A DNA stretch of 35,996 nt from Octopus bimaculoides (GCF_001194135.2 NC_069004.1:9145559-9181554), one strand, 5' to 3'; positions 3,921-28,884 are shown, numbered from the stretch's first letter. Translations and numbers: made by a program. Notes: a model not told the origin generated them from the letters alone.

Positions 3921-3926
3921 TTTGTT
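3921..3926 (-). terminator. Variant hexamer AACAAA at the homologous poly(A) position of exon A
   Basis: Context GTGGAACAAAGCATTATTTGAACAG aligns with the other four copies but has a T>C change in the hexamer. Confidence 0.4.
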
Positions 3927-4188: not shown

Positions 4189-4723
4189 CTAAAGGTGACG
4201 TGTCTTTGGTTTTGCAAGTTCTGTTAATCGTTCACTAGCAACCACATGCTGTGTGGTGGGGTTCACTTTGAAAGGGTTGTATGTGACCTTACTCATTCTC
4301 CTAGACAGTGGTGTGCTTAGTTCTACCAGCCTTTGCGATATTTTCATTTTCAATGTCAACTTGTTAATGCGGTCCTGAATCTGTTGATTCACTCTGTTAC
4401 ATGAATGGCATGACTTTCTGACTGCTAGCCTTTCCAGCGTTGGACAGAATGTACCATTGCCAAAAGAGGCTCTTTTGCTATCATACAACTTACTTTTTTG
4501 AAATTCCGCAAGCCTACAAATTGAGTGACGTGGTATTGGTACAGCAAGTACATGAATTTGAGGTGATAGTATTGCATTTTTGGCTGAGGGTAGCACTTCA
4601 GATGGCACTGGTCTCACTCTTACAATATGTGGATGAAATTTCTTTGAAACTGCAAGGTGAATCACTCTTGGACTGCTATTAGCATTCAGAGCAGTGGTAG
4701 GCACTGGCCACTGGGCTGTTGCT
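4189..4723 (-). CDS. THEG: THEG-like terminal exon A (most distal); (R)ATAQWPVPTTALNANSS...ASERLTELAKPKTRHL*
   Basis: Same acceptor (CAG at 4726-4724) and phase. Intact frame to TAG. Repeats 2 and 3 have lost the core Arg. Confidence 0.78.
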
Positions 4724-4789
4724 CTGAAAGAAACACAAATTGTTTAATGAATGCTCTCTTTATTTTTCTCCTAGTATATGTATTTACAT

Positions 4790-5350
4790 AGCTTGTTTGA
4801 AGGAGAGGAGACTTTCAGGTTAGGGATAGAAGGCTGGGGTAAGAAGGGAAGACCTAAAACTGAAAATGGAATTGCTGACTTGTGAGAGAGGTTACAGAGT
4901 GTAAGGAGGGTCATTCATTTGTATTCATCAGTGTTGTGATTCCAAGTATGTTTAAGTGTAAGGGATTTTCTTTCTACTCCTCTGGATATGTGAAAATGCT
5001 GCACAGTGATGGATGAATGATGGTGCATATACCAACCCTGTTAATTTGTTTGTAAAATTTGCCAGAGAAAGAGAAAAGGGTTAGGATGAATTCATCTATG
5101 TTGAAGAACATAGCTGTGAACAGCAACCAAAATCCAGGAGGTGCTGTTATGCTAGGTGATAGACTGCTTTCTACACCACCAAAACTAATTATGGTCTACT
5201 GGACACAATTTGTGTATTGCAAATCTTTAGCAGACTTGACAGGATATGCTACATGTACAAATATGTCACATGTAGAAAGATGTCACATGTAGATTTTGTT
5301 AGAAAATAAAAATGCACTCAGTACAGGCTGCAAAAATGTCTGCATGCAAA
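4790..5350 (-). mobile_element. Deleted Penelope-like remnant and shared flank between exons B and A
   Basis: Shares the catcagtgttgtg segment with 6648-6660, shares the 3' end with the other spacers, and 5120-5346 matches 9329-9555. Confidence 0.45.
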
Positions 5351-5632
5351 ATAGCCATAAAAACATACCAGATTTAGGGCTATACACAAGAATATTGGAC
5401 ACCTTTTTTCTCCTTGAATATGCCAGCTGGTAGAAACCACAGTAAATGATGAGTCAAAGAATGAAGATGATCAGTGAATCAAACCAGACCCATCCAACCA
5501 ACCAATGAATATAAAAACATGAAACATGTAAAATGACTGCAGTAATAAAGACAAAGATAACAACAAAGACATTGACATAAACAATGATGATGGTAAGAAA
5601 CATTCCACCTATACTTTCTGTTGAAATAATGC

Positions 5633-5638
5633 TTTATT
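5633..5638 (-). terminator. Poly(A) signal AATAAA of exon B
   Basis: Same conserved context ~280 nt after the stop. Confidence 0.65.
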
Positions 5639-5917
5639 TCACAAAAATAATATATAAAATATATATTATGCTTAGTGTCTCATCACTAACACTCAAATTA
5701 TCTCATCATTTTTTTTTCTAACTGAGATGATATTTTTATATTTTGGAGTGGTTTCATTTTTCATACATTTCTTTGGTTTGCTTTGTTTTAAGGGATTTTT
5801 TCCCCCCTTCTTATTTTCTGAAATGCAAGTCCACACACTTTTGAAAAGAAAAAAATATTTCAAAGATTCGAAACATGAAGATTTCTGTAGAAAAGATTTA
5901 AAGTTAAAAGAGTTAAC

Positions 5918-6452
5918 TTAAAGTTGGTATTTCTTTGGTTTCGCAAGTTCCACTATTCGATCGCTAGCGACAGCATGCTGTGCAGAAGGGTTCACTTTGA
6001 AAGGCTCAAATGTGTTCTTCATCAGTCTCCTAGGATGTGGGCTGCTTAGTTCCTCTATTCTCGGTGATGGTACAGCAGTCAGTGCTGCCCTGGTAATGGG
6101 ACGCTGACTTGGTAGATTTGGTACAAAATTTGGATGCAATGACTTGCTGACTGCTAACTTCTCCAGCCTCGAATAAGTTGTACTACTGCTAACAGAAGCT
6201 GGTTTGATTGCATACAACTTACTTTTCTGACCTGGCTGAAGTTTAGTGCTTATTCTCCGCGGTACTGGTACAGAAAGTAAAAGAATTCGAGGTGAAGGTT
6301 TTACATTTCTAGCTGATATTGGCACTGCAGTTTGCACGGGTCTTGGTGCTATAAAAAGTGGATGAAATTTCTTTGAAACTGCAAGGTCAATCACTCTTGG
6401 ACTGCAAGTAGCATTCATGGCAGCGGAAGACACTGGCCACTGTGGTGATGCC
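5918..6452 (-). CDS. THEG: THEG-like terminal exon B; (R)ASPQWPVSSAAMNATCS...ASDRIVELAKPKKYQL*
   Basis: Same acceptor (CAG at 6455-6453) and phase. Intact frame to TAA. All five repeats keep the core Arg. Confidence 0.8.
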
Positions 6453-6559
6453 CTGAAAGAAACACAAATGCTTTAGTGAATGTTCTCTTCCTTTTTTTTT
6501 TTTTCTTAGTTTATTTATTTACATTGCTTTTTGAAGGAAAGGTTTTCAGCATGGGGTGA

Positions 6560-7780
6560 GAGGAAATGTTGGGGGTCAATTGAGGGAATAAATAGGATAA
6601 CTGAACTGGAAGTACATGAAGTTAAGGGTGGGACATTTATCTATACCCATCAGTGTTGTGGGGCAGGCAGGTTTGAGTGAGAGGGTGTAGATCTTTCTAT
6701 TTCCTTGGGTGTGTCGAGGTACTGCACATTGATGGATGGGGGATGGAGTGGCCTCCTGTGTTGAGTTGTGTCGCATATGTAGTGGTGTGGTTCAGGTATG
6801 TCTACAGAGGTGATCAACAATGCAATTGCCTGTTTCCCCAATATAAAATACACCATAGGATTTTGGGATGATACTGTAGTTGAGTTTTCATGATGTGCTG
6901 TGAATGTTTCGGGTGAAGTGGTGTTGTGGCCAGGACCCAATTATAATTGTGGTCTAGGTGATGTGGAGACAGGTGCATTTAAGGGCACTTGGTTGTGTGT
7001 GGATAGGTCCTGTGGAGCTTCAGTATAGGAGGTTACCAATGTTCCTGTCTTTCTTGGAAGTAGGGGAGTGATAAGAACTGCTGTTGGATTGGAGAATTAT
7101 ATTTGGGATTTGCAGACAATTGTGTTTTAGTAAGAGGGCAGATAGCTGTAGTAGGTGTCCATCTTGGAGCTGTGGATGTAGAGGGGTGGAAGAAGAGTGC
7201 CGCTGTCTCTAACCTGGCAGAAAAGAGTGCATGGGTACTATCAATTCAGGAAAAGTTTGCATTTTACTCATATTTGGGTTCAAAATTTTGATTCAATACT
7301 GCATAGTCAATGAAGCTGGTGGAATTTGGAGAATGGTGTAGCAGACTGTGTTTAAGATCTTAAAAGGAATAGTGGAGAGAGGAATGAGAAATATTGAAGG
7401 TGATGTTGAGAAAAGCAATTGATATATCAGTTATGATGAGAGTAAGTTCCAAGATGAGGTAAAAAGAGTTAAAAAAAAAAATGAAACTATCAATCTGTTG
7501 CCTGGTGAGAGTGATAGCACCAACAGGAGTTGGGCAAACACTTAATTCTTAATATACCCTACTAAAAAATTTGTGTAGGTGGGAGTCATATTGGTGCCCA
7601 TAGTGACACCACTAAACTGTTTGTAAAATTCTCCAGTGAAAGAAAAGAGGGAGGGAGGTTGATATCATTTAAGTGAAGGAATCAGACAGTGTTGTGTACA
7701 CATAGGTGCTGTCAAGTCTTGTAAGCTTTTAAAAGCTGATGACATTACCTATGGAAGATGACTGAATAGAGTGGTTTAAC
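6560..7780 (-). mobile_element. Decayed Penelope-like retroelement, paralog of 10780-12010
   Basis: FSFTGEFYKQFSGVTMGTNMTPTYTNFLVGYIK at ~7550-7650 (RT motif B). The endonuclease part is nearly identical to 10805-11188. Confidence 0.75.
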
Positions 7781-8219
7781 ATGCATAGTGAGATGGAGCT
7801 TTGACAGCACAGGGAGAAAAGAGAACAAGAAGGATTTAGTACATGGGTTTTATCTTTAATGTGTAAGTGTAAGGCAGTGTCAAGCGGTGATGATGTTCCA
7901 TCAAGAAAAATGCACTCGGTTCAGGCAACAACAACTATTTATATGAGGAACAGACAAAAAAAAACCTTACCAAAATTATGGACATACACAACCATGTTGA
8001 ATGGCTTTTCTTCCCCAGTGTATGCCAGCTGGTGATGAGACAAAGGATGATGAGGACACTGAGATAAATGCACCACATCCAACCAACCAAAGTAAAAAAA
8101 AATAAATAGATGTAAAATGATGATGATGATGATGATGACAAAGATGAAAACAAAGATATCCACATAGACAATGACGATGGCAAGAAACATTTCACCTATA
8201 CTTTCTGTTCAAATAATGC

Positions 8220-8225
8220 TTTATT
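8220..8225 (-). terminator. Poly(A) signal AATAAA of exon C
   Basis: Same conserved context ~295 nt after the stop. Confidence 0.65.
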
Positions 8226-8340
8226 TCACAAAATAATATATAATACATATTATCTTTTGTGTATAACCACTGATACAAAAATCATTTCATTCTTTTGTTT
8301 CTCAGTCAGACAATATTTATAATTTCAGTGAGTTTTTCTT

Positions 8341-8379
<39 letters not shown>

Positions 8380-8519
8380 CTATGTTCCTTTTCTTCTTTT
8401 ATTTTTCCTACTTATTTTTTCTGAAATGCCTGGCCACAAACTTTTGTGTCAAAGAAAAACGTTTCAGAAACACGAAAGATAAATATTCCTGTAGAAAACA
8501 TGAAAGCTAACATAGTGGA

Positions 8520-9054
8520 CTAAAGGTGGTGTGTCTTTGGTTTTGCAAGTTCTGTTAAACGTTCACTAGCAACCGCATGCTGTGAGGTGGGGTTAACTTT
8601 GAAAGGGTTGTATGTGTCCTTAATCAGTTTCCTAGACAGTGGTATGCTTAGTTCTACCAGCCTTGGTGGTGTTTTTATATTCAATGTTGACTTGGGAAAG
8701 GGCTGCTGAATCTGTTGACTCATTCTGTTATATGAACGAGGTAACTTTCTGATTTCTAAGATTTCCAGCTGTGAATAGTTTGTACTACTGCTAACAGAGT
8801 CTTTTTTGTCTTCATACAACTTACTTTTCTGAAATTCCACAAGCTTACACACTGAGTGACGTACTATTGGTACAGCAAGTACACGAAGTCGAGGTGATGG
8901 TTTTGCATTTCTGGCTGACAGTGACACTTCAATTGGCACTGGTCTTGATGCTACAAAATTTGGATGAAATTTCTTTGAAACTGCAAGGTTAATCACTCTT
9001 GGACTGCAATTAGCATTCAGGGCAGTAGTTGACACTGGCCACTGGGCTGTTGCT
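8520..9054 (-). CDS. THEG: THEG-like terminal exon C; (R)ATAQWPVSTTALNANCS...ASERLTELAKPKTHHL*
   Basis: Same acceptor (CAG at 9057-9055) and phase. Intact frame to TAG. About 65% aa identity to exon A by hand alignment. Confidence 0.8.
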
Positions 9055-9119
9055 CTGAAAGAAACACAAATTGTTTAATGAATGCTCTCTTTCTTTTTCT
9101 CCTAGCATATTTATTTACA

Positions 9120-9560
9120 TTGCTTGTTTGAAGGAGAGGAGGCTTTCAGGTGTGGGACAGAAGGAAAGGTTGGGAAAGATTTGCTATTCAATGTGGCCTA
9201 CAACAATCTTTGGATAAGTTGCACCCATGTTGGTGCTCACACCAATCCTGTTAATATGTCTGTAATATACTCCAGTGAAGAAAAAAAGGTTAGAATGGGT
9301 CCATCTATGTTGAGAGACATAGATATGTACAGCAACCAAAATCCAGGAGGTGCTGTTATGCTAGGTGATAGACTGCTTTCTACACCACCAAAACTAATTA
9401 TGGTCTACTGGACACAATTTGTGTATTGCAAATCTTTAGCAGACTTGACAGGATATGCTACATGTACAAATATGTCACATGTAGAAAGATGTTACATGCA
9501 GATTTTGTTAGAAAATAAAAATGCACTCAGTACAGGCTGCAAAAATGTCTGCATGAATAA
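9120..9560 (-). mobile_element. Internally deleted Penelope-like remnant between exons D and C
   Basis: 9185-9300 aligns with the RT motif-B region at 11830-11930. Its downstream end matches the 3' ends at ~4790, ~6525 and ~10740. Confidence 0.5.
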
Positions 9561-9846
9561 TGGTCATAAAAATCCAGCAAGATTAAGGACATACACAAGG
9601 AGGTTGGAAACCTTTAACTCTCCTTATATATATGCCAGCTGGTGGAAACCACAGTAAATCATGCGACAAAGAAATGATGATGATCAGTGAAACAAGCCAG
9701 ACCCATCCAACCAACCAATGAATGAAAAATGTAAACATGTAAAATGACGATAACGATGTTGAGGACAAAGATGATAGCAAAGACATCAACATAAACAATG
9801 ATGATGGTAAGAAACATTTTACCTATACTTTCTGTTGAAATAATGC

Positions 9847-9852
9847 TTTATT
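9847..9852 (-). terminator. Poly(A) signal AATAAA of exon D
   Basis: Same conserved context ~300 nt after the stop. Confidence 0.65.
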
Positions 9853-10148
9853 TCACAAAATAATATATAATATATATACTATGCTTAGTTATCTAATCAG
9901 TGACACTCAAATCATTTCATCATTTTTTTTTCTGACTGAAATGATATTTTATATTTTGGAGTGGTTTTGTTTTGATATATATATGTGTATATATATATAT
10001 ATATTTTTTTATTTGCTTCGGCTTTGTAGGGTTTGCTTCCTTCTTCTTTTTCTAAAATGCCCATCCACAGGGTTTAGAGAAAAAAAATATTTTTTAAATT
10101 CAAAACATGAAGACTTCTGTAGAATAGATGAAAGTAGAAATGGTGAAC

Positions 10149-10680
10149 TTAAAGTTGGTATTTCTTTGGTTTTGCAAGTTGCAATATTCGATCAGTAGCA
10201 ACCACATGCTGTGTGGTGGGGATCACTTTGAAAGGCTCAAATGTATTCTTAATCATTTTCCTAGAAGGTGGGGCACTTAGTTCTACTAGTCTCGGTGATG
10301 CTATAGCAGTCAATGCTGCCCGGGTAATGGGACGCTGTTTCTGTTGATTCGGGAGAAAATTTGGATGCAATGACTTGCTGACTGCTAACTTTTCCAGCCT
10401 TGGATAGGTTCTGCTGCTAACAGAAGCTTGTTTAACTTTATGCGAATTACTTTTCTCACCTTCCTGAATTTTAGTGGTTATTTTGCGCGGTACCGGAAGA
10501 GCAAGTACAATAATTCGAGGTGAAGGTTTTACATTTCTAGCTGACAATGGCACTTCAGTTTGCACGGGTCTTGGTGCTATAAAAAGTGGATGAAATTTCT
10601 TTGAAACTGCAAGGTCAGTCAGTCTTCGACTGCAATTAGCATTCATGGCAGCGGAAGACACTGGCCACTGTGGTGATACC
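10149..10680 (-). CDS. THEG: THEG-like terminal exon D; (R)VSPQWPVSSAAMNANCS...ATDRILQLAKPKKYQL*
   Basis: Same acceptor (CAG at 10683-10681) and phase. Intact frame to TAA with one in-frame codon deletion. About 74% aa identity to exon B by hand alignment. Confidence 0.8.
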
Positions 10681-10779
10681 CTGAAAGAAACACAAATGGT
10701 TTAATGAATGCTCTCTTCCTTTTTTATGTATATTTACGCTGCTTGTTTGAAGGAAAGGAAGCTTTCAGCATGGAAGAGG

Positions 10780-12010
10780 AGGAAAGTTTAAGGTGCCAGG
10801 GGGTATAAATAGGATAACTGAACTGGAAGTACATGAAGTTAAGGGTGGGACATTTATCTATACCCATCAGTGTTGTGGGGCAGGCAGGTTTGAGTGAGAG
10901 GGTGTAGATCTTTCTATTTCCTTGGGTGTGTCGAGGTACTGCACATTGATGGATGGGGGATGGAGTGGCCTCCTGTGTTGAGTTGTGTCGCATATGTAGT
11001 GGTGTGGTTCAGGTATGTCTGCAGAGGTGATCAACAATGCAATTGCCTGTTTCCCCAATATAAAATACACCATAGGATTTTGGGATGGTACTGTAGTTGA
11101 GTTTGCATGATGTGCTGTGAATGTTTCGGGTGAAGTGGTGTTGTGGCCAGGACCCAATTAAAATTGTGGTCTAGGTGATGTGGAGACAAGTGTTGCATCA
11201 TTACTGAGTGCATTTAAGGGTACTTGATTGTGTGTGGATAGGTGCTGTGGAGCTTCAGTATAGGAGGTTACCAATGTTCTTGTCTTTCTTGGAAGTAGGA
11301 AGTGATAAGAACTGCTGTTGGATTGGAGAATCATATTTGGGGTTTCTATAGGAGAGTGGATGGCTGTAGTAGGTGTCCAACATGTGGGTTTGCTTGTAGA
11401 AGGATGGGAGAACGGTGCCACTATGTACAGCCTGTCAGAAAAGAGTGCAGAGTCCACAACTGATTGTGGGTACTCTTAGTTCTTGGAGAAATGTTGCATT
11501 TTCTCATATTTAGGTCCAAATTTTGATTCAGTGTTGCATAGTCAATGAAGTTGATGAAATTTGGAGAATGATATGGCAGATTGAGTGTGTTTAAGGTCAG
11601 AGGAATTGTGGAGAGAAGAGTGATAATTGATGATGGAGATATTGAGAAAAATAAGATATGTAAGATATTGAAGGAGTGTAAATTCAAAGGTTAGGTTAAA
11701 GGAATTAATAAAAGAGATGAACCTATCAAACTGCTGCCTGGTGAGAATGGTAACACTGAAACAGTTATTAATAAACAACCATTCAGCTTTGGATCGTGTC
11801 CTGTGTGTTGAGAAAATATCTGCTTTTCAATATGGCCTACAAAGTGTTTTGCGTAACTAGGGTCCATCTTGGTGTTCATAGTGATACCACTGAGTTGTAT
11901 GCAAAATTCTCCAGTGAAGGAGGAATGGGTTTGGACAAGTTCATCTAAATGGAAGAATGTGATAGCGTTCTGGACAGGCAGAGGCTGGTGGTTCCAATAT
12001 CCACCAAACA
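10780..12010 (-). mobile_element. Decayed Penelope-like retroelement (RT + GIY-YIG endonuclease remnants)
   Basis: Frameshifted pieces QLSGITMNTKMDPSYAKHFVGHIEKQIF (RT motif B), FINNC...QFDRFISFINSF (decayed YIDD region) and IGETGNCIVDHL...PTTLMGID (GIY-YIG C-terminus) resemble Penelope-type ORFs. Boundaries approximate. Confidence 0.75.
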
Positions 12011-12015
12011 TATGT

Positions 12016-12074
<59 letters not shown>

Positions 12075-12287
12075 CGTACACACACACACACACACACGAT
12101 ATATCATTATCATCATCATTTAACATCTATCTTCCATGATGGCATGGGTTGGACAGTTTGACGGGAGCTGGCAAGTCAGAGGGCTGCACCAGGTTCCAGT
12201 TGTCTGTTTTGGCAACGTTTCTATGGCTAGATGCCCTTCCTAACACCAATTACTTTACAGAGTGTACTGAGTGCATGGAAATATATA

Positions 12288-12340
<53 letters not shown>

Positions 12341-12363
12341 ATCATCAATAATATATATATACA

Positions 12364-13244
12364 CAAGGTGCGATGGGTAAATTGTTACCATTTTATATTT
12401 TTCATTTCGCAAATGCACATTGTTTGTTTTTGATTTTGTCGACTACACAGTATAGTAGGGTTACTATACAGTTGAGCACTGTATGTTAGTAAAACAGTAC
12501 CGTGACGCAATTCACCCAGCCAGAAATTTGGGAACGACATGATGTACTGCTTGGCATTCACACTCGAAGCTGCAATACGAACATTTCAGAGTGTTTTGAT
12601 ATCAGTCTGAGGACATGTACCGAGAGTGATAAAGATAAAGCATCCAGTCAACATCATGGTGTTTGGAGTGATCACTAGTGATGGCAATGTTATGCCTCCA
12701 TTTAACATTCTCACATCACCTCAGACTCAACACGGATGCCTACATCAAGTGCCTGGAAGAGGTAGTGTTGCCCTGGGTTAAGAAGGTAGCTGCTGGAAGA
12801 CCCTATGTCTGACAACAGGACTCTATATCATGTCACACAAGCAGGAGAACTCAGTCATGGTTATCAGACAATTTCTGCGACCACATCACCCCTAACATCT
12901 GGCCACCTAACTCCCCAAACTGCAATCCCTTGATTATTATGTGTGGGGCACAATTGAGCAAGAGACCAACAAAACTCTTTGTAACACCAAAGATGAGTTG
13001 AAGGTAAGGATTATGGCAGCATTCACCAACCTAAACAAGGGGACTGTTCAGAATAGTTGCAGGAGATTCCAAAGTCGTCTGGAGGCCATGGTTGATGTCA
13101 TTGGCGATTTTATTGAATAAATTTACTCTTTAGTATTTCAAGATATTTTAATGCAATTTTGGTAAATATATCTGTTAAAATGAGATGTCAAGTGTTATTT
13201 TCATTTTTGCGTAATTTAGATGACAGTTTATTCACCGCACCCTG
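12364..13244 (+). mobile_element. Non-autonomous maT (DD37D Tc1/mariner) DNA transposon inserted into the Penelope remnant
   Basis: Imperfect TIRs CAAGGTGCGATGGG ... TTCACCGCACCCTG followed by TA. The transposase C-terminal remnant includes QQDS...IWPPNSPNCNPLD, with the family's 37-residue spacing. Confidence 0.8.
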
Positions 13245-13246
13245 TA

Positions 13247-13313
<67 letters not shown>

Positions 13314-13321
13314 ATAAAATC

Positions 13322-13360
<39 letters not shown>

Positions 13361-13968
13361 ATTAGTTATGGGGGAGACAATTTCAATGCCTCTGAAAATG
13401 GTGGAAGAAAGAAAGTAGTAGTTATTCTTTGACCAAATATCTGAACCAAATGTTTGAAACAAGTGGAATCTATTAATGGCAGCCAAAATCCAGGAGGTGA
13501 TATTAAGCCAAATGTTCAGTTACTGTCTACACTACCAAAAATAAGAATGGTCTGTTGTACACAATTTGAGTGTTGCAAATTTACATGGACTTGATTGGAT
13601 ATGCTCCATGTAGATAGATTCCACATGCAGATTTTGTTAGAAAATAAGAATGCACTCAGTACAGGCTGCAAAAATGTTTGCATGAGGATTGGCCATAAAA
13701 GCTGCCAAAATTACAGACACACACAAGGAGGTTGGACGCCTTTTCTCTCCTTGAATACGCCAGCTGGTAGAAACCACAGTAAAAAATGAGACAAAGGATG
13801 ATGACAAGTGAAACAAGAGGAGACTCATCGAACCAACCAATGAAAAAAGCATGTAGATATGTAAAATGATGATGACAATGTCAAAGACAAAGATGATAAG
13901 AAAGACATCAACACAAACAATGATGATGGTAAGAAACATTCCACCTATACTTTCTGTTGAAATAATGC

Positions 13969-13974
13969 TTTATT
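13969..13974 (-). terminator. Poly(A) signal AATAAA of exon E
   Basis: Conserved context GTGAAATAAAGCATTATTTCAACAG ~290 nt after the stop, followed by GU/U-rich sequence. Confidence 0.65.
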
Positions 13975-14263
13975 TCACAAAATAATATATAAAATATATA
14001 TTATGCATAGTTATCTAATCTCTAACACTCAAATCATCTCATCTTTTTTTTTTTTTTGTGACAGAGATGATATTTTATGTTTTGGTGTGGTTTCATTTTC
14101 ATATTTCTTTTCTGTTTTTTGTGGGGAGGTTTTTTTAATTTTTTTTTTTATTCTCATTTTTCTGAAATGCTGTCCACACACTTTTGGCCAAAAAAAAAAT
14201 GACATTTGTAAACCTTGAAACATGAATATTCATATAGAATAGATGAAAGTTTAAAATATTGAA

Positions 14264-14780
14264 CTAAAGGTGATGTGACTTTGGTTTTGCAAGTTCCCTT
14301 AAGCGTTCACTAGCAACCACATGCTGTGTGGTGGGGCTCACTTTGAAAGGGTTGTGTGTTTCCTTAACAAATCTCCTAGAAGGTGGAGCGCTTAGTTCTC
14401 CCACTCTTGATGAAGCTGTCTTGAGAGGTAGGGGGTAAATCAATTGACTCGTGCGAGTAGGAAGTAACAACTTGCTTATTCCTAACTTTTCCAATCTTGC
14501 ACTAGTTGTACTGCTGCTAATAGAAGCTTGTCTAATTTCATACAACTTGCGTTTCTGAAATTCCTCAAGTTTAGCAGTTACTTTGCGTGGTACCGGTGCA
14601 GCAAGTACACGAATTCGATGTGATGGTATTGCATTTCTGGCTGATATTGGTACTTCAGTTTGCACTGGTTTTGGTTCTAGAAATTGTGGATGGGGTTTCT
14701 TTGAAACTGCAAGGTCAATCACTCTCGGACTGCAATTAGCATTCAGGGCAGCAGTAGACACTGGCCACTGGGCTGACTCT
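14264..14780 (-). CDS. THEG: THEG-like terminal exon E (most proximal); (R)ESAQWPVSTAALNANCSPRVIDLAVSK...ASERLRELAKPKSHHL*
   Basis: Acceptor TTGTGTTTCTTTCAG at 14781, phase 2, and open to TAG. It holds five S-x-R-(ILV)-x-x-L-(AS)-x-(PS)-K repeats spaced ~30-40 aa, resembling the THEG repeat. It has an in-frame 6-codon deletion relative to the other copies. The ORF-track M is a GTG inside the exon. Confidence 0.8.
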
Positions 14781-15923: not shown

Positions 15924-15990
15924 CTGGGTGGAACATATCTTGCGTGTAATTGCTTGGATTGAGAAAGAACCATAAGTCTTTGAGACACTG
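15924..15990 (-). CDS. THEG: Constant internal exon (67 nt, phase 1 to phase 2) of the THEG-like gene, (A)VSQRLMVLSQSKQLHARYVPP(R)
   Basis: Acceptor TATCTTTACCATTCTCTCTAATCTGCAG and donor CCCAG|GTATGT. The translation is a THEG-type repeat that aligns with SPRVIDLAVSKKFHPLFIAPR of the terminal exons. Its final AG joins the first base (A or G) of each terminal exon to make Arg (AGA/AGG) in frame. Confidence 0.8.
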
Positions 15991-16919
15991 CTGCAGATTA
16001 GAGAGAATGGTAAAGATATAGTGTGTTAAAAGTGGATCGCTACACATTTGTGCATGTGTGTGTGTGTGTGAATATGTGAGAATGTGTATGCATAGCCTTG
16101 CGTATCTCTGAGACTGAGTGTGTCTCTCCTTGCTGTCATTTAACCCTAGGTTAGCCCTAATCCTGTAGACCTATGACCAAAAACACTCCAGATGTGACCA
16201 TCCCTTTCTTTCTTTTTTTTTTAAGTGCATCTGAATGACCTTATCCAATATGTCCTTTCAACTTCTAAAATTTTTTTGTAAGACAGCAGTGATACAGGGG
16301 AGACATAGCTGCTATTTCTAGCAAGTCAAAGGAACCTGTACAGCAATGGCACTCAATCTTTTTAACTTCATGTGGTATTAGAGATCGGGCACTAATGATC
16401 AGTTTTCAAATTGACTGATATTCTTGCCTATATATATATATATATGTATGTATGTATGTATTATTTATTTAAAAGCAGCAGAAATGTAACAAAAAACTGT
16501 TACTCGGAGTTTCACGTTCCCGTTCATTGGACAGTTTTGTTAGAAAATCTAACAAAGCTGTCCGATGAACGGGAACATGAAACTCCGAGTAACAGTTTTT
16601 TGTTATATTTCTGCTGCTTTTAAATAAAGCATATTACTCTACCTCTGGTATTTGAGTACTCTTTTTTCTACCTTGTTGCACATTTATGTGCTTACTCCGG
16701 TNNNNNNNNNNNNNNNNNNNNNNNNNNNNNNNNNNNNNNNNNNNNNNNNNNNNNNNNNNNNNNNNNNNNNNNNNNNNNNNNNNNNNNNNNNNNNNNNNNN
16801 NNNNNNNNNNNNNNNNNNNNNNNNNNNNNNNNNNNNNNNNNNNNNNNNNNNNNNNNNNNNNNNNNNNNNNNNNNNNNNNNNNNNNNNNNNNNNNNNNNNN
16901 NNNNNNNNNNNNNNNNNNN

Positions 16920-17945
16920 AGAATTGGTCCATTCATACTGGCCATCTTTCCAACATTCACCACCTTTCAACAAATTTGCCATGAGACAATACTTCTGTCT
17001 CTGCTCTCACCTTCCTTTTCAAGTGGAATTTGAAAAAGTTGATGAGGCCTTGGCCAAAGAGGAAAGTGTCTGACTTTAGCCCTTTCAAACGGGTCCACCA
17101 TACCACCTCTTTTGCTAAAGCCACCAGACAAATGAAAATTGCCTTTCCCTCCCGGTTAAAAGTCAGTGGGGTAATCTTCACTATGGATTCAGCTGATAGC
17201 CGGATCCGTCTTACACGCGACAGTAGCTTTTCAACATAAACCCACAGGTCAGCAATACTCGGGCACTGGACGAGTGCGTGCAGAATGATTTCGTTGCTCT
17301 GAGTGCACCTCAGGCAGGCCTGGCTGATGGCACGTCCGTGCTGGTAGAGTTTATCCCGAACAGGCAGCGCCCCTCGGTAGCAGTGTCAGGCAAGGGACTT
17401 TTGGAAGTTATCCATGGGCCTCGGCCTGAAAGTTCCGCCAAATAGACTGCTTAGCTGGTCATCGTCGACACCTAGAGTTTTCCTGAGAATGTCATCACAC
17501 TTTTCCTGCACTAACCCTTTATAGAACGCTAGAGTGGAACTACTACTGATCGCATTGCAGGCCTGTCGGAGGGCGGTGAGAGCTTGACAGCACTCGAGGT
17601 GCGAAGCGCCCTTTCCTAGTCTATGTTTGATCCAAGATTGCAGCTCAATCAAAGATACGAGCTGTGAAAAGGAGAGCCTGACGAACGGCGACCACACCTG
17701 CTTACCATCCAGGAAAGGCTTGGGATGCCGTAGCCTGAGTGAATGTCTGCACATCAGCAACCACGGCAGGCCCAGACCTCTGCTCAGTGGCTGTTGACAG
17801 CAGATGGAGCACCCCTTCCACAGACAGTCAAAGAGCAAGCGTACCAGCTTGGCCAACCAGCAGTCAGGACGAGGGACGACAGTCAAGCGGTAATAGATGA
17901 CGGATGTGATGTACGCATTCGCCATAAAAATGGTTTCAAATTTTG
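16920..17945 (-). mobile_element. Tx1/L1-clade LINE 3' fragment (post-RT region with CCHC knuckle)
   Basis: ANAYITSVIYYRLTVVP...LFDCLWKG...GLGLP..., then CLRCTQSNEIILHALVQCP (CCHC) and IFICLVALAKEVVWW. Interrupted by a stop. Confidence 0.8.
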
Positions 17946-18502
17946 GGACCAGGCCCCAGGAATTTTAATGGAGGAGTTAAGTCAATTACATCAACCCCAG
18001 TGTTCAACTGGTACTTATTCTACTGACTCTAAATGGATGAAGGTCAAACCTGACCCCCAGCAGTATTTGAATCCAGAACATAAAGTATTTTGTCCAAAAT
18101 GCCAATCTGCCAGGTTGTCACCATCACTGATGATGATGATGATGATGGCGATGATGATGAGGATTTCTTTTATTGGCCACAAGGACCCAAGACATGGAGG
18201 ACAATATTGAAGGATAAGTTACAGCACAAAAAAATGTAAACTGACTGGCTGGTGTAGTGTGTTCTTGAGCAAGGCACTTCATTTCACATTGCTCCAGTTC
18301 CCCTTTTTCTATCAGTGGGGAATGTTGGCCTGCTCACCTAGCCATCAGGGTGTCATTATTTGAAGGCTAAAACAATACAAAAGCACATTGTGACCAGCGA
18401 TGTGTAACAACATCTGATAGCCTGGTCGGTCATGTGATCATGCGATAAATAAACCAGAATTACATTTGACAGAATAATCCGAATACTAAAAGGTTAACTT
18501 AC

Positions 18503-18506
18503 CCAT
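18503..18506 (-). CDS. Candidate start-codon exon end (ATG + G, phase 1) of the THEG-like gene; 5' boundary unknown
   Basis: Minus strand reads CAGCCAGCATC-ATG-G|GTAAGT, with a perfect donor, A at -3 and G at +4. Phase 1 matches the 67-nt exon at 15990 (G|CA = Ala), giving MAVSQRL... Additional exons could lie in the N-gap at 16702-16919 or further upstream. Confidence 0.5.
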
Positions 18507-18652: not shown

Positions 18653-18754
18653 AATTGAGGCAGATCTGTTTGTGAGTAAAAAAAATATAAATAAATAAAT
18701 AACGAAATAAAAGCAACAATGTTAAACTGATATATTCTTTTTACGCTTTTACTT

Positions 18755-19143
18755 GTTTCAGTCATTTGATTGTGGCCATGCTGGAGCACCGCCTTTAGTT
18801 GAGCAAATCGACCCCAGGACTTATTCTTTGGAAGCTTAGTACTTATTCTATCATACTCTTTTGCCGAACCGCTAAGTTACGGGGACGTAAACACACCACC
18901 ATCGGTTGTCAAGCGATGCTGGGGGGACAAACACAGACACACAAACATATACACACACATACATACATATACATATATACGACGGGCTTCTTTCAGTTTC
19001 TGTCTACCAAATCCACTCACAAGGCTTTGGTCGGCCTGAGGCTATAGTAGGAGACACTTGCCCAAAGTGCCACGCAATGGGAATGAACCCGGAACCATGT
19101 GGTTGGTAAGCAAGCTACTTACCACACAGCCACTCCTGCGCCT
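18755..19143 (-). repeat. Full-length tRNA-derived SINE
   Basis: Same head as 1967, central (TA/CA)n tract, and tail shared with 22900-23120. Confidence 0.75.
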
Positions 19144-20490
19144 ATGACACATTTTTTTTACAGATTTTGGCAGAAAAATCTCCCATATTTTACATAGCTA
19201 CTGCTTTGGTGCTAGTAAAGTCAAGTAGTTTATAATAATCCTTTCTACTTTAGACACAAGGCCTGAAATTTGTGGGCTGACAATAACCTCAATGAATGGA
19301 AAATATTTGTCAACACATGCCTTCTTGCAGACAAAAGAGTTCTCATGCTTGGCTTGTTACTATGGAAAAAGACATGAATGTGTCAGTGGCTTACGATTGG
19401 TTAAAATTACCCCAAATTTGCAAACTTTAAAAGCTAATAACTCTTTATTTATCGATTCATTGTGAAAATGAATCTGAAACCATGTTATTATACTGAATAT
19501 GAAATCAGTTTGAGCAGAAATTGAAGAGATTGAAAACTGGCAGCCAAAGAGAATAGATCTCCTCTTCCTTGCCATCCTCTGAGGCAAATTCCTCTTCCAT
19601 TTTGTCTGTAGAGACCATGAAATAGACTGACAAGCCTTTTTAGATATTACTTGTTATTTATTGTTTTATTCACCAATATATTTAGATAACTTCAAAACTG
19701 TTTCTCACTGACACAATATTGAATAATGAAACCTTTTTACGCACCTGCACTAGTTTTACCAAAACGTAAATTTTCCACTTCCTGTCTTCAGTGAAACTCT
19801 TAGAATATTCCAGAAACTTGATTTGTTTTTTTTATTTTCTTTAGTTTTTTTTCTCCTCCCCTTTTAGTTCTAAAAGCATAAAAAAAAGTAGTTGCATTCA
19901 TAAAAGATGGAATCAACAGACGGACAATTCTATTACCTGCCAGTGGCATGCAGTCTGGCACTGAATGCCCGTTGATTTTTATATAACTCGAAAATCAATT
20001 TAAGAATGTAATGTATTTATAACCACATTGAAAAGTTGTCCAAATCACTGGAAACTGAGTTAAAATAGTTATTTGGTTTCAAAGGGGATCCATCCAGATT
20101 GATACTTTGCTGTGTTTCCATTTTACTTCCACTAGGCATGCTTAAAGAAAAATGCATAGGAAATCTTTTGTCCCCCATTTCCTATCTTTCAATAACTATC
20201 ATTTCAATGCCTGTAAGATTCTTTTTCATCTCCATAAAATAACTACAGAAGGCACGTTTTGGCTTCCCCTCCCTTTCTATCAGTTCCTCTTTGTCAACAA
20301 TTCTTTGTAATTGATGTCACTAATGCAATAGGCTAAATGGTCAAATGGGTTTGACTTTTTGACCCCTAAAAATTCTGACTGAAACATATCAACAATCCCT
20401 TAATTCTTAATGAGTCAGCTCAAATGTTGCTGTGACTCTGGAATATCTATTTCACTCTGTTGTAAGTTTTGAAATTATTATTATTATTAA

Positions 20491-21005: not shown

Positions 21006-22630
21006 AAAAAAAAGAAAAAAATCCCCTGCACTGAACAAAAACATTCTGAAATCAGAATTATAATACAGCTGATTAATCTTTGATTGATTTACAAAAATTA
21101 TCTTTCTGTTTTGTTGAAACTGATTTACAATTCACGATTGCAGTAAAATGAGGTATACTGTGACAACGTGAAATGAAAGTGTTCAGTTTTTTTGTTTTTT
21201 TACAACTGAAAGTGATTTTTTTTCTACAAAATGAAACTTGTAAGTTACAAAAAATATGAGAGCAGAAATAAGTCAAATCTCCAACAAACTCTTCTTTACA
21301 ACTTTGTCACAGTATTTCTCATTTTACTGCGGGAAACTTCTCTGAAAGAAATCTTTGCAGAAAAGTGAGTAGATTGATTACATATTTCTTTCATTATTTT
21401 ATCGCAGTTTTTTTGCCCAGCGAATTCCTGCGAGATTTGGCTGCTATTTCTAGTATATGGGTAGCCTGCCTGATGGCCGTAAAATCAGGAGGGGAGAGGT
21501 TGGGTTNNNNNNNNNNNNNNNNNNNNNNNNNNNNNNNNNNNNNNNNNNNNNNNNNNNNNNNNNNNNNNNNNNNNNNNNNNNNNNNNNNNNNNNNNNNNNN
21601 NNNNNNNNNNNTTTTTTTTTTTTTTTTTTTTTTTTTTTTGAAAACTGAAATTTTACAAGGAATTTTTTTTCAGAATCACAATCTCTGTATTTTTCTATGT
21701 ATTTCCCCCACCAAAAAAATTTCTGAAAAAAGTGAAAAATGGTGGGAAATTGAAATTTTGAAGTTGCAATTTTCGCCAATTTTTTTTTCAGAACTGGAAT
21801 CTCCATAACCAAAAATGTGGGTTTCCATAAAAAAAATTTTTTTTTAAAGTGGGGTGGGAGGGTTCAGTTACATCTCCGCCATGTGCACCAAGTATTTATT
21901 GTCTGACTAACTTCGTAAGTCACCGCATGTCACTGTTACCTACTATTGTTGTTGTTGTTTTCTGTGTAGTTCTTGTTTATCACCACTACCACCATCAGTT
22001 CAGCCCCAACGAAGTAGATTTATAATCAAGACATCCCACCCATGACCATTCAGATCTTTGTTTTTATCTTTTATCTCTTCTTTTTGACTTGTTGCTGTCA
22101 CTGGACTGCGGCCATGCTGGGGCACAGCCTTGAAGAGTTTAGTCAAACAAATTGACCCCAGTACTTATTCATTTATTCTTTTTTCCCAGTTCTTATTTTA
22201 TCAGCCCCTTTTGTTGAACAGCTAGGTTACAGGGACGTAAACAAACCAACACCACTTGCCAATTGGTGATGGGAGACAAACACATACACAAAAACAAACA
22301 CACATTGATATATACATATATGAATATATATGATGGACTCTCTTGTTGAAGACAACATGTAGCTGAATGACCTGCACAAATGATTTGTTTATAATAATAG
22401 TCAAATGTTTGTGCCGCACATTAGTTCATTCTCTCCATCAAATCAACACTGTCTGAACAGGTGCACAGGTGTACCATATGTCAGGTGTTGAAGCGATCGC
22501 ATGACAACATCAGATGAAGTGTTTTGCTCAAGAAGACAACACACCACCACCTGCTCTAGGAATTGAAACCATGATCTCGCAATCATGAGTGCAACACTCT
22601 TACCACTAGGCCACGTATATATCTATATAT

Positions 22631-22802
22631 AGGTGCAGGAGTGGCTATGTGGTAAGTAGCTTACTTACCAACCACATAGTCCTGGGTTCAGTTCCACTGC
22701 ATGGTACCTTGAGCAAGTGTCTTCTATTATAGTCTCAGGCGAACCAAAGCCTCATTAGTGGATTTGGTAAACAGAAACTGAAAGAAGCCTATCGTGTGTG
22801 TA

Positions 22803-22891
<89 letters not shown>

Positions 22892-23125
22892 GTATATATC
22901 TATGTGTGTGTGTCTTTGTGTCTGTGTTTGTACCCCCATTACCACTTGACAACCGGTGTTGGCGTGTTTACATTTCCATAACTCAGTAGTTCAGCAATAG
23001 AGACTGATAGAATAAGAACTAGGCCTAAAAAATATGTCCTGGGGTAGACTTGTTTGACTCAAAACCTCTCAAGGAGGTGCTCCAGCATGGCTGCAGTGAA
23101 ATGACTGAAACAAATAAAAGAATAT
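22631..23125 (+). repeat. Full-length tRNA-derived SINE with expanded central (TA)n
   Basis: Head, microsatellite and tail collinear with 18755-19143. A further minus-strand tail fragment lies at ~22075-22330. Confidence 0.75.
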
Positions 23126-26511: not shown

Positions 26512-26707
26512 NNNNNNNNNNNNNNNNNNNNNNNNNNNNNNNNNNNNNNNNNNNNNNNNNNNNNNNNNNNNNNNNNNNNNNNNNNNNNNNNNNNNNNNNN
26601 NNNNNNNNNNNNNNNNNNNNNNNNNNNNNNNNNNNNNNNNNNNNNNNNNNNNNNNNNNNNNNNNNNNNNNNNNNNNNNNNNNNNNNNNNNNNNNNNNNAT
26701 ATATACA

Positions 26708-27686: not shown

Positions 27687-28884
27687 ATGATGATGATGAT
27701 GATGGTGGTAGTGGTGGTGGTGATTGTGGTGGTGGTTGTTACAGCGGTCGTGGTGGTGGTGAGAGTAGTAGTGATGATGATAGTGGCCACAGCGGCGGTA
27801 GTGGTGGTATCAATGATAAGTCATAACGATGATAACAAGGTTATTCTTGGAAACGACTTTCATTTTGTTTTCTGAGAAATTTACTTTCACGACCAGTAGT
27901 AGCTGCAACAGATGGTGGTAGTTGTAGTGGTCAAGGTTATGGTAATGCGGTGGTTGTGGTGATGTAATTCTGGAAGTGGTGGAGGAACAGTGACCCCACA
28001 GTGGCTGCAGTGGTAATTGCAATAGTGGTTGTGGTAGTAGTGGTGGTGGTGGTGGTGAAGGTGGTAGAAGTAATGGCGATGGTTGTTGAGGTAGTAGTAG
28101 TGGTGATGGTGGACGTGGTAGTGATGGTTGTTGTTTTTGCTGTGGTGGTGGTTGTAGTAGTAGTAGTGGTGGTAGTAGTAGTAGTGGTGGTGGTGGTAGT
28201 AATAGTAGTAGTAGTGGTGGTGGTGGTAGAAGTAGTTGTGGTGGTAGTAGTAGTGGTGGTGGTGGTAGTAGTGGTGGTGGTGGTAGTAGTGGTCGATATG
28301 ATGGAGACGGGTCAGTAATACGAACAGTAATTAATGTGTGTATGACATAGCCGTGCTAGAGCAAATGGCGGCGGCGCCGGCGGTGGTGGAAACGATGATG
28401 AAGTCGTTACGTTAGTGTTTACAATAATCACAGTGGCGTAGTGGTGTTGGTGGTGGTGATGATGATAATGATGTTTTGCCTTTGTCGTGGTTGTTATTGT
28501 TGTTGTTGTTGGTGGTGGTGAAGTCGTGTCGGTGTTCATAATGGTGCCTGGTGAGGTCGCTGCAAAAGCGGCGACGCTGGTGATGCTTTTACATTGTGGT
28601 TGCTGTTGCATGTGGTAGTGATGGTGGCGGTGTTAATGTTGTTACTGGTGCTGGCGATTGTTGATGTTGTTATTTTGGTGGTGGTGGTGGTGGTGGTGGT
28701 GGAAGCGAAGGTGGTGGAGGCTGTTGTGGTAGTGGTGACTGTGGTGATGGAAACTGTGGTGGTGAAGGCGGTGGTGATAGTGGTTGTGGAGGGGGAGAGT
28801 ATTGAGTATTTCCAAGAAAACCATAAATCGGAAAAGTCCCAGAAATATCACCACCACCACTACCACCATCATCATCATCATCAT
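27687..28884. repeat. Low-complexity (GTG/GTA/ATG)n trinucleotide-rich tract
   Basis: Produces the poly-V, poly-P, poly-H and poly-T ORFs. I found no continuous open frame across the tract. Confidence 0.85.

Follow-up and report, generated by a model that had tools for sequence, protein, structure and literature searches.

The window, a stretch of 35,996 nt from Octopus bimaculoides (GCF_001194135.2 NC_069004.1:9145559-9181554), carries on its minus strand a tandem array of five alternative 3'-terminal coding exons (A to E) of a THEG/SPMAP2-like gene. Along the transcript the exons follow one another in the order E, D, C, B, A. The initial ORF limits on this strand were 4189-4704, 5918-6433, 8520-9035, 10149-10661 and 14264-14761; the true starts of the exons lie 19 nt further upstream, directly after a conserved acceptor, tgtgtttctttcag, which is identical in all five copies. 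The sequence TTGTGTTTCTTTCAG, at the 3' splice site of the variable exons, is likewise invariant (11 of 11 copies). Each exon has its own stop, and the homologous stop terminates all five. The features of the gene are:

18503-18506, minus strand: exon 1, 3' end (ATG start codon and a single G), then donor gtaagt (reads ...catcATGG/gtaagt)
15924-15990, minus strand: constant coding exon 2, 67 nt (reads ctgcag/CAGTG...CCCAG/gtatgt)
14264-14780, minus strand: variable terminal exon E, 171 codons plus stop (RefSeq isoform X4, XP_052832216.1)
13969-13974, minus strand: AATAAA of exon E, within the block TTTTGTGAAATAAAGCATTATTT, 290 nt after the stop; conserved
10149-10680, minus strand: variable terminal exon D, 176 codons plus stop (isoform X3, XP_052832215.1)
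9847-9852, minus strand: AATAAA of exon D, 297 nt after the stop; conserved
8520-9054, minus strand: variable terminal exon C, 177 codons plus stop (isoform X2, XP_052832214.1)
8220-8225, minus strand: AATAAA of exon C, 295 nt after the stop; conserved
5918-6452, minus strand: variable terminal exon B, 177 codons plus stop (isoform X1, XP_052832213.1)
5633-5638, minus strand: AATAAA of exon B, 280 nt after the stop; conserved
4189-4723, minus strand: variable terminal exon A, 177 codons plus stop; open frame behind the conserved acceptor, absent from annotated proteins
3921-3926, minus strand: hexamer of exon A at the homologous position, mutated to AACAAA

The constant part of the gene consists of exon 1 (ATG plus G), whose start position agrees with the common start of four RefSeq products, and exon 2 (23 codons). 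Exon 2 encodes AVSQRLMVLSQSKQLHARYVPP, with one THEG repeat inside, plus the first two bases of an Arg codon, and it is 100% identical to residues 2-24 of XP_052832213-16. The splice phase is compatible: exon 2 ends ..CCC AG/gt and the variable exons open with A or G, completing the Arg codon. All variable exons share the resulting N-terminus of 24 residues, and each adds 171 to 177 of the ~200 residues, arranged in five THEG repeats. RefSeq already has isoforms for E, D, C and B, and A is unlisted; the four entries, which are models and not reads, join the constant exon from one start to each of these exons, and exons B and C match their isoforms at 100%. Choice of one variable exon would end the transcript there, giving four or five proteins with a common N-terminus. 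A conserved 5' splice site at the variable-exon ends was not noticed on plain inspection of the sequence.

Behind each variable exon lies a conserved 3'UTR with a poly(A) signal of its own. The AATAAA of the conserved block is present in 10 of 11 copies from two species, O. bimaculoides A being the sole loss; a separate AATAAA lies 119 nt after the stop of exon A.

The Pfam family PF14912 matches every octopus isoform and ORF, and a profile search leads to metazoan SPMAP2 and SPMAP2L. Structure entries give the same picture: PDB 8SNB chain 8A, the THEG-like protein of the sea-urchin sperm doublet, is matched over residues 9-196 (E=1.1e-16), and bovine THEGL in PDB 8OTZ is matched with E=7e-15, the similarity to both spanning the full length of the octopus protein. 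Judged by this similarity, the octopus proteins are homologs of sperm doublet-microtubule proteins. SPMAP2 and SPMAP2L occupy the outer face of sperm doublets, a niche like that of the ArcMAP paralogs (PMC7617938). Like SPMAP2 (THEG) and SPMAP2L (THEGL), the octopus protein is built of consecutive x-R-[ILV]-x-x-L-[AS]-x-[PS]-K repeats, and these short arginine/leucine repeats would line up on successive tubulin protofilaments. A role in the axoneme or on microtubules is putative, as are expression and location in sperm. The octopus protein is shorter, ~200 aa compared with 268 to 450 for SPMAP2/SPMAP2L, and the gene is built differently: mammals have two paralogs as two separate genes, whereas in the octopus four or five alternative whole-body exons share one promoter and one N-terminus.

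Amino-acid identity among the variable exons ranges from 46 to 75%. Two intron stretches are nearly the same:

10801-11100, minus strand: candidate conversion-tract partner, upstream of exon D, 99% identical to 6584-6883
6584-6883, minus strand: candidate conversion tract, intron stretch upstream of exon B, 99% identical to 10801-11100

We read this identity as a probable recent gene-conversion tract, running into the first ~180 nt of both exons. Within the first 180 nt, the nearest neighbours are the within-species B/D pairs in three of three species sets, and tree topologies disagree between exon partitions. Gene conversion thus evidently homogenises the upstream intron and the exon ends repeatedly, B with D and A with C. 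The central segment shows clean orthology in every window. Exon E had no conversion partner in the window-wise nearest-neighbour comparison, and its rate is as high as that of the others. The extra exon B2 of O. sinensis is mosaic, C-like in its 5' part and B-like in its 3' part, and the intron upstream of it is A-like.

The preliminary description of the locus had noted variable exons that keep their frame while diverging strongly, and its observations are confirmed. All five copies are open with the homologous stop, their sole indels are 3 nt (D) and 18 nt (E), and the 59 residue differences counted between A and C and the 45 between B and D are correct, over 177 and 176 residues respectively. 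The length of 171 residues over which it compared A with C and B with D was too short: with the exons starting 19 nt further upstream, A to D have 177, 177, 177 and 176 codons and E has 171. The frame constraint that it proposed is strongly supported. Across O. bimaculoides, O. sinensis, O. vulgaris and one further octopod, 19 of 19 copies are open behind the same acceptor, with 0 stops, frameshifts or losses of a splice signal. Between the five O. bimaculoides/O. sinensis ortholog pairs, 5 of 5 exon indels are multiples of 3 (chance probability ~7e-4), whereas in the flanking 500 nt of the same pairs 29 of 38 indels are not, in line with the description of flanks full of arbitrary indels. Under random substitution at the observed ortholog divergence, the chance of one copy staying stop-free is 0.05 to 0.17, and the joint chance (product) for the five pairs is 1.2e-5. 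Furthermore, 32 columns, which correspond to the THEG-repeat cores, are invariant across 13 sequences; of the 32 to 36 columns that do not vary among the other sequences, 0 to 3 differ within the ortholog pairs of B, C, D and E. Over shorter time, six exons compared between O. sinensis and O. vulgaris, species whose non-coding DNA differs by 1.4 to 2.2%, show 5 non-synonymous and 8 synonymous changes (pN/pS ~0.2). Together these data strongly support the view that selection maintains frame, length and ~32 repeat-core residues.

The second part of the earlier interpretation, diversifying selection, is only partly supported. It had been drawn from a hand count of ~70 non-synonymous to 15 synonymous differences between A and C, and Nei-Gojobori counting returns nearly the same values, 71.0 and 14.0, over 406 non-synonymous and 125 synonymous sites (5.1:1 against 3.25:1 expected; omega 1.64). 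By itself this excess is weak. Across the ten within-species pairs omega spans 0.48 to 1.64, and A-C stands at the top. Its excess stays after CpG masking (omega 1.76), and relative to omega=1 it gives p=0.12 in a Fisher test on the counts and p=0.023 in an ML likelihood-ratio test; in the central segment the ML omega of the pair is 3.57 (p=0.005). Mean dN/dS is not significantly above 1: over the whole sequence omega is ~0.95, not distinguishable from 1. Pooling the five ortholog pairs gives omega 0.94 (p=0.65 vs 1), none of the five rejects omega=1 singly, and the partitioned M0 model gives 0.956 (p=0.63 vs 1). On B/D and on the C-terminal third, selection is on balance purifying (omega ~0.6 to 0.7). 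Relative to the non-coding divergence of 0.0935, the non-synonymous p-distance is higher for A (0.149, p=7e-4), for C (0.138, p=0.004) and for the pooled exons (0.119, p=8e-4). Synonymous divergence (0.134) likewise exceeds the non-coding level (p=0.0015), indicating that part of this 'faster than introns' signal is not selection on the protein. The linkers between the repeats, mainly alignment codons 61-140, evolve at or above the local neutral rate.

Such linkers could arise in the same architecture with no positive selection at all, an explanation that we consider a serious possibility, if one falling somewhat short of even. Here the cores would be under purifying selection and the linkers, like a disordered spacer between tubulin-binding repeats, would drift at omega=1 with only length and frame constrained, and the modest likelihood-ratio signals would reflect recombination, multi-nucleotide mutation, uncertain alignment and segments and branches chosen post hoc. 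The overall omega of 0.94 to 0.96 and the rapid synonymous sites agree with it. So do three features of the site models, which we fitted to 13 sequences of recombining paralogs with our own GY94/F3x4 code, NJ topologies, hand-chosen breakpoints and no multi-hit model. Their test statistic weakens from p=3e-4 unpartitioned to p=0.038 once each segment has a separate tree; under the partitioned M1a, which already fits, 80% of sites have omega=1, and the extra site class has an omega of just 1.4 to 1.7. Codons with multiple hits between A and C are in surplus (18 observed vs 12 expected, p=0.015), and multi-nucleotide mutation could be inflating omega on the A/C stem branches.

Other results speak against drift alone. 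After recombination partitioning, the site models still favour an additional class with omega ~1.5 to 1.7 (M1a/M2a p=0.038, M7/M8 p=0.027, M8a/M8 p=0.008), with the NJ trees, hand-chosen breakpoints and code just named. In the central segment, M0 omega is 1.18 and M1a/M2a gives 2dlnL=9.24 (p=0.0098), assigning 59% of sites to a class with omega 1.68; the observed value was reached in 2 of 200 parametric bootstrap replicates (~0.01). The stem branches of A and C carry many replacements and almost zero synonymous change (omega ~17, 2dlnL=9.07, chi-square p=0.0026; reached in 2 of 75 bootstrap replicates, p ~0.03), and the non-synonymous divergence of both exons exceeds the non-coding level. Finally, constant neutral drift does not predict that recent pN/pS (~0.2) should lie far below long-term omega (0.94); the counts are 5:8 for O. 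sinensis/O. vulgaris and 237.5:84.5 for O. bimaculoides/O. sinensis (Fisher p=0.0096), the short-term sample being 13 differences between two species, a proxy for a McDonald-Kreitman test and not true polymorphism. Taken together, the evidence for diversifying selection is suggestive only.

We therefore lean, with modest confidence, towards an array of alternative terminal exons that is constrained in frame, subject to gene conversion and endowed with fast linkers that are partly adaptive. On the adaptive component by itself our judgement is evenly balanced. In this proposal, part of the linker divergence would be adaptive, chiefly in a burst on the A and C branches right after their duplication, and the rest would be near-neutral drift of linkers whose length is constrained and whose sequence is free. 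The fast linkers thus hint at adaptive diversification without proving it.

The preliminary description had itself named relaxed pseudo-exons as an alternative, in which the copies are decaying and open by chance. For B to E this is refuted by their RefSeq isoforms, almost intact motif columns, the low joint chance of open frames and indels that are all multiples of 3, and the low recent pN/pS over six exons likewise opposes it. As an account of the array we regard it as very improbable; what support it has is confined to exon A, for which alone it remains. This exon is in no annotated protein of either species, its translation has no match among database proteins, and its conserved AATAAA is gone in O. 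bimaculoides. The core Arg of its repeat 2 is replaced by Gln in the O. bimaculoides copy and by Leu in that of O. sinensis, its two orthologs disagree at 8 of the 41 columns that are invariant otherwise, compared with 0 to 3 in the other pairs, their omega is 1.08, and its chance of being stop-free (0.05 to 0.07) is not negligible. A too, however, has retained the acceptor, an intact frame in two species and the 32 set-wide invariant columns. Exon A thus looks partly relaxed.

It is equally improbable that gene conversion generated the excess divergence as a side effect, with tracts from diverged paralogs producing clustered differences, ortholog divergence raised above that of the introns, distorted trees and spurious omega above 1: conversion is clearly active at the locus, the B2 exon of O. 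sinensis is mosaic and synonymous and non-synonymous divergence are both above non-coding, but conversion moves both types of difference together and thus alone cannot push omega above the paralog level, the cleanly orthologous central segment carries the signal, and exon E, with no conversion partner, is equally fast.

In its high mean omega of ~1, its suggestive site-class evidence for omega above 1 and its sperm-specific family, the octopus gene resembles rapidly evolving male reproductive proteins. Unlike gamete-recognition and seminal proteins, its product is by homology an axonemal structural component, so that no obvious selective agent presents itself, and the support for omega above 1 is modest.

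The exon array has several known counterparts. Like Dscam1, it holds tandem homologous exons of which one would enter each transcript, but the octopus exons are terminal and not internal cassettes. Dscam-type docking/selector pairing between the conserved element upstream of each acceptor and the constant intron was no better than shuffled: the best duplex energies were -17 to -23 kcal/mol, and shuffled controls averaged -19 to -22. Competing RNA pairing of this type finds no support in these energies. In the Drosophila genes lola and mod(mdg4), constant 5' exons are spliced to a single member of a tandem set of terminal exons, every one of which carries a stop and a poly(A) site. The octopus proteins likewise have a common N-terminus and variable C-terminal bodies; in contrast to lola and mod(mdg4), the variable exons are close paralogs with ongoing sequence exchange through gene conversion, and no evidence of trans-splicing was found in the octopus gene. 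In the clustered protocadherins and UGT1A, variable first exons are spliced to constant exons, and the choice is made by promoter. The octopus array resembles these in its large paralogous exons, each coding for the bulk of the protein and attached to a shared part, and in its dynamics of duplication and conversion. It is also their mirror image: the variable part is the 3' end, and splicing together with polyadenylation would select the exon.

The window is genomic DNA of Octopus bimaculoides; the gene matches the chromosome stretch CM046624.1:9151078-9167064 and lies on the minus strand. Two constant exons supply a common N-terminus, MAVSQRLMVLSQSKQLHARYVPPR, and each of the five variable exons, transcribed in the order E, D, C, B, A, encodes ~88% of a small protein.

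Exons of the gene, with the RefSeq isoform that ends at each variable exon
18506-18503, minus strand: end of exon 1, reading ...catcATGG followed at the junction by gtaagt
15990..15924, minus strand: exon 2, constant, 67 nt, flanked by ctgcag before and gtatgt after
14780..14264, minus strand: variable exon E, open from acceptor; XP_052832216, 195 aa
10680..10149, minus strand: variable exon D, open from acceptor; XP_052832215, 200 aa
9054..8520, minus strand: variable exon C, open from acceptor; XP_052832214, 201 aa
6452..5918, minus strand: variable exon B, open from acceptor; XP_052832213, 201 aa
4723..4189, minus strand: variable exon A, open from acceptor

RefSeq lists four products that have one common start and distinct ends at E, D, C and B; the variable exons are therefore alternative last exons. 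Translated, copies B and C match RefSeq 'testicular haploid expressed gene protein isoform X1' and isoform X2, respectively, at 100% identity. An almost invariant acceptor, ...TTGTGTTTCTTTCAG, stands directly before each variable exon, and exon 2 ends in phase 2, its Arg codon being completed by the first base (A or G) of every variable exon. Past each stop, at ~263 to 297 nt, lies a strongly conserved 3'UTR block, TTTTGTGAAATAAAGCATTATTT, with AATAAA. On reading the variable exon ends we noticed no conserved 5' splice site. GTG is not the true start of the five open reading frames; the near-invariant acceptor precedes each and the frame is open from there. We rejected five separate genes, since no copy has its own start codon or promoter, acceptor and phase are common and the RefSeq isoforms start together. 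Five assembly gaps (N runs at 836-1494, 16702-16919, 21507-21611, 26512-26698 and 35480-35579; 1,269 bases in total) leave the exon array untouched.

We propose that transcription begins upstream of 18506, that exon 2 would be joined to one acceptor among several of equal strength and that cleavage at the poly(A) site of the chosen exon would terminate the transcript, therefore leaving one variable exon per mRNA. This would yield four or five SPMAP2-like proteins that share the first repeat exactly and the tubulin-binding cores almost exactly, and that differ in their linkers. A docking/selector RNA pairing of the Dscam type, between the conserved pre-acceptor element and the constant intron, was rejected, as the pairing was no better than that of shuffled sequence.

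Other features of the window were recorded alongside the gene. Intron 1 contains, just downstream of the start-codon exon, a GC-rich region (17001-18210; 51% vs ~35% for the window) with overlapping ORFs of 179 aa (minus) and 155 aa (plus), for which a CpG-island-like promoter-proximal region and a transposon are both candidates. Each of the five variable exons (4189-14780) shows strong CpG depletion, with 6 to 13 observed vs 22 to 26 expected. At 28010-28330 and 28639-28797 lies a G-rich tandem array that has periods of 9, 12 and 15 nt and a very strong GC skew of 0.57. Within a GC-rich kilobase (49%), a 130-aa ORF at 30124-30516 may resemble the C-terminal portion of a protein from a non-LTR retrotransposon. 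A short interspersed repeat has copies at 1958-2133, 18735-19145 and 22620-23124, each of which matches at least 15 places of the O. sinensis locus (50 kb) with 70 to 93% identity. The window gave no structured RNA, tRNA or Rfam match.

At the loci of O. sinensis (L001) and O. vulgaris (L002), the constant exon is accompanied by six copies, with gene order conserved: E', D', C', B', B2', A'. Best matches track gene order, thus the duplications are older than the split between O. bimaculoides and O. sinensis. The sixth variable exon, B2', sits between B' and A' (L001:46685-47219; L002:49678-50212) and is absent in O. bimaculoides. Two octopod genomic contigs from SRA runs (SRR11869391 and SRR11869385) add one B-type and one D-type exon. 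Across O. bimaculoides, O. sinensis, O. vulgaris and the SRA octopod, 19/19 copies are open and have the same acceptor.

Public models of the locus need care. The RefSeq isoforms are automatic models, and several older or automatic models look like concatenation artefacts: multiple terminal exons are strung together in the O. vulgaris 296-aa model and in the old O. bimaculoides XP_014772091.1 (487 aa). UniProt A0A0L8HJN6 and the 209-aa protein of O. sinensis, which begin within the intron, also look like artefacts. O. sinensis isoform X1 joins the first half of E to the second half of C; we read it as a model artefact because the junction in E has no GT donor, and for the same reason rejected the exon-internal splicing that it suggested. 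A literature search found no paper on this octopus gene or locus.

The preliminary description held that the copies keep their frame while their flanks do not, and this claim is strongly supported by the open frames, the exon indels and the motif columns. The amino-acid differences that it had counted recur here (A vs C, 59/177 residues; B vs D, 45/176), as do the only indels among the five copies, of 3 nt in D and 18 nt in E. Between the five O. bimaculoides/O. sinensis ortholog pairs, 5/5 exon indels are multiples of three, whereas 29/38 of those in the 500-nt flanks are not. In the fast centre of exon E, a compensated frameshift was rejected in favour of the single 3-nt indel seen in a nucleotide-level alignment. 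Under random substitution at the observed ortholog divergence, a copy would stay free of stops with a probability of 0.05 to 0.17, giving a product of 1.2e-5 over the five pairs. Orthologs rarely differ at motif columns, scored for each pair as those invariant in the other eleven sequences (B 0/32, C 3/36, D 2/34, E 1/33), vs 19 to 32% at other columns; for pair A the count is 8/41. Between O. sinensis and O. vulgaris, six exons show 5 non-synonymous and 8 synonymous changes (pN/pS ~0.2), and non-coding divergence at the locus is 1.4 to 2.2%. Together these results show that the copies are functional coding exons, with exon A a partial exception.

Exon A is the only O. bimaculoides variable exon without an annotated isoform; RefSeq omits it although it is open, and it occurs in no protein of a 15-billion-sequence collection. 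Its conserved AATAAA hexamer (3921-3926) now reads AACAAA in O. bimaculoides, the sole change among 11 copies. The core Arg of repeat 2 is replaced in exon A of O. bimaculoides and of O. sinensis, by different residues, and exon A of O. sinensis and O. vulgaris contains an internal in-frame duplication (ARPLPTKIAKP twice).

The copies have exchanged sequence. In the first ~180 nt, B and D are mutual nearest neighbours within each of three species sets (p-distance 0.00 to 0.06), and in O. bimaculoides A pairs with C at both exon ends; the exon centre (nt 181-480) tracks orthology, and partition trees differ accordingly. The B and D units share a 300-nt tract of 99% identity in their upstream introns. 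B2' is a mosaic that resembles C over its 5' 180 nt (p-distance 0.05 to 0.10) and B in its 3' part, and its upstream intron is 98.4% identical to that of A' (8 differing positions in 500 nt). Furthermore, C and A of O. sinensis and O. vulgaris (L001:40995-41538 and L001:48403-48967) have lost the homologous stop and gained a five-codon extension, YSSLC or YSSQC before the new stop; the same loss in two paralogs points to gene conversion at the 3' ends. Tests of dN/dS must therefore allow for recombination.

Diversifying selection had been proposed from a hand count of about five non-synonymous differences to one synonymous between A and C. The count is reproduced (71.0 to 14.0 over 406 to 125 sites, Nei-Gojobori), yet the 5:1 ratio alone does not demonstrate selection: by counts omega is 1.64 with a Fisher p=0.12, B-D gives 0.68, and the ten within-species pairs span 0.48 to 1.64. 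By pairwise maximum likelihood (GY94, F3x4, kappa estimated) A-C reaches 1.99 (p=0.023), and CpG bias was rejected as the cause of the excess, since omega is 1.76 with all CpG codons masked. The five ortholog pairs give ML omegas of 1.08, 0.71, 1.47, 0.62 and 1.01, and pooled 0.94 (p=0.65 vs 1).

Site models were fitted with our own implementation to 13 sequences, a small sample, with a separate NJ topology for each of three segments whose boundaries were chosen by eye. With shared parameters, the joint fit gave M0 omega 0.956, M1a/M2a 2dlnL 6.54 (p=0.038), M7/M8 7.25 (p=0.027) and M8a/M8 7.04 (p=0.008). Without partitioning, M0 omega was 0.93 and M1a/M2a 2dlnL 16.2, a p of 3e-4 that is inflated because of recombination. 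The central segment (codons 61-140) had M0 omega 1.18 and M1a/M2a 2dlnL 9.24 (p=0.0098), a statistic reached in 2/200 parametric-bootstrap replicates; M2a placed 16% of its sites at omega 0.15 and 59% at 1.68. Codons with posterior >0.9 (alignment columns 73, 74, 77, 87, 90, 91, 97, 98 and 115) all lie in the inter-repeat linkers of this segment. In the N-terminal third (M0 omega 0.80; 2dlnL 9.35, p=0.009) the signal is a single site class comprising 1.9% of sites, and the C-terminal third (M0 omega 0.74; 2dlnL 0.25) was not significant. A branch model of the central segment assigned omega ~17 to the two post-duplication branches leading to the A and C clades, over a background of 1.01 (2dlnL=9.07 vs omega=1, chi-square p=0.0026; reached in 2/75 bootstrap replicates). 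Multi-hit codons are in excess for A-C (18 vs 12 expected, p=0.015), and the fitted models have no multi-hit term.

We compared these rates with non-coding divergence between O. bimaculoides and O. sinensis (p-distance 0.0935 over 7,948 sites across the locus). Non-synonymous p-distance exceeds it in A (0.149, p=7e-4), in C (0.138, p=0.004) and pooled (0.119, p=8e-4), but so does synonymous p-distance (0.134, p=0.0015), for which conversion from diverged paralogs, constraint on introns and under-counting of non-coding differences at gaps are candidates. The non-synonymous to synonymous ratio differs between the short term (5:8, O. sinensis vs O. vulgaris) and the long term (237.5:84.5, O. bimaculoides vs O. 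sinensis; Fisher p=0.0096), the short-term sample being 13 differences between two species rather than true polymorphism.

The exon-wide mean rates of replacement and silent change are equal. This average conceals ~20% of codons, in the repeat cores, that are strongly conserved, a C-terminal third under net purifying selection, and linkers evolving at or somewhat above the neutral rate. A simpler account, that the linkers drift neutrally and are constrained in length only, agrees with the equal mean rates; we give it a real chance, if short of an even one. Several partly independent tests, each at p ~0.01 to 0.04, are suggestive of an adaptive component in linker divergence, most pronounced along the A and C branches that directly follow their duplication. 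Diversifying selection stands as a suggestion, at the level of linkers and not of the mean.

All copies contain Pfam PF14912 (THEG repeat), and a profile search finds SPMAP2/THEG and SPMAP2L in animals ranging from sponges to mammals. Each octopus variable exon has five repeats of the pattern x-R-[ILV]-x-x-L-[AS]-x-[PS]-K, with a sixth in the constant exon, and the 32 columns invariant in 13 sequences are the repeat cores. A search of solved structures aligned isoform residues 9-196 to a chain of 8SNB, the sea-urchin sperm doublet microtubule, named 'testicular haploid expressed gene protein-like' (E=1e-16); the isoform also aligns with bovine THEGL in 8OTZ. Judged from this homology, the octopus protein probably has a microtubule role. 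A published comparison (PMC7617938) puts SPMAP2 and SPMAP2L at the outer face of mammalian sperm doublets, where their niche is similar to that of the trypanosomatid ArcMAP paralogs; the latter arc over protofilaments and contribute to each one a helix and a conserved arginine.

Array architecture, fast evolution of sperm proteins and conversion around a divergent core are already known kinds of phenomenon; the locus leaves the general picture unchanged and, on a small scale, is reasonably suited to testing methods that tell conversion, multi-nucleotide mutation and selection apart. If the adaptive reading of the linkers is true, exon duplication, alternative 3'-end choice, gene conversion and selection would jointly shape one sperm-axoneme protein, and a lineage would multiply a microtubule-decorating protein without multiplying genes. 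One further reading, which we consider unlikely, is that the array is a one-gene route to a set of SPMAP2-type paralogs at distinct fixed positions on the octopus sperm doublet microtubule, where conversion would keep the tubulin-binding repeats uniform and the linkers, diversified adaptively after each exon duplication, would specify position or partners. Were the copies to hold such distinct positions, the octopus array could be likened to the SPMAP2/SPMAP2L pair of mammals and to the 1-2-3-4-4-4 pattern of the trypanosomatid ArcMAPs.
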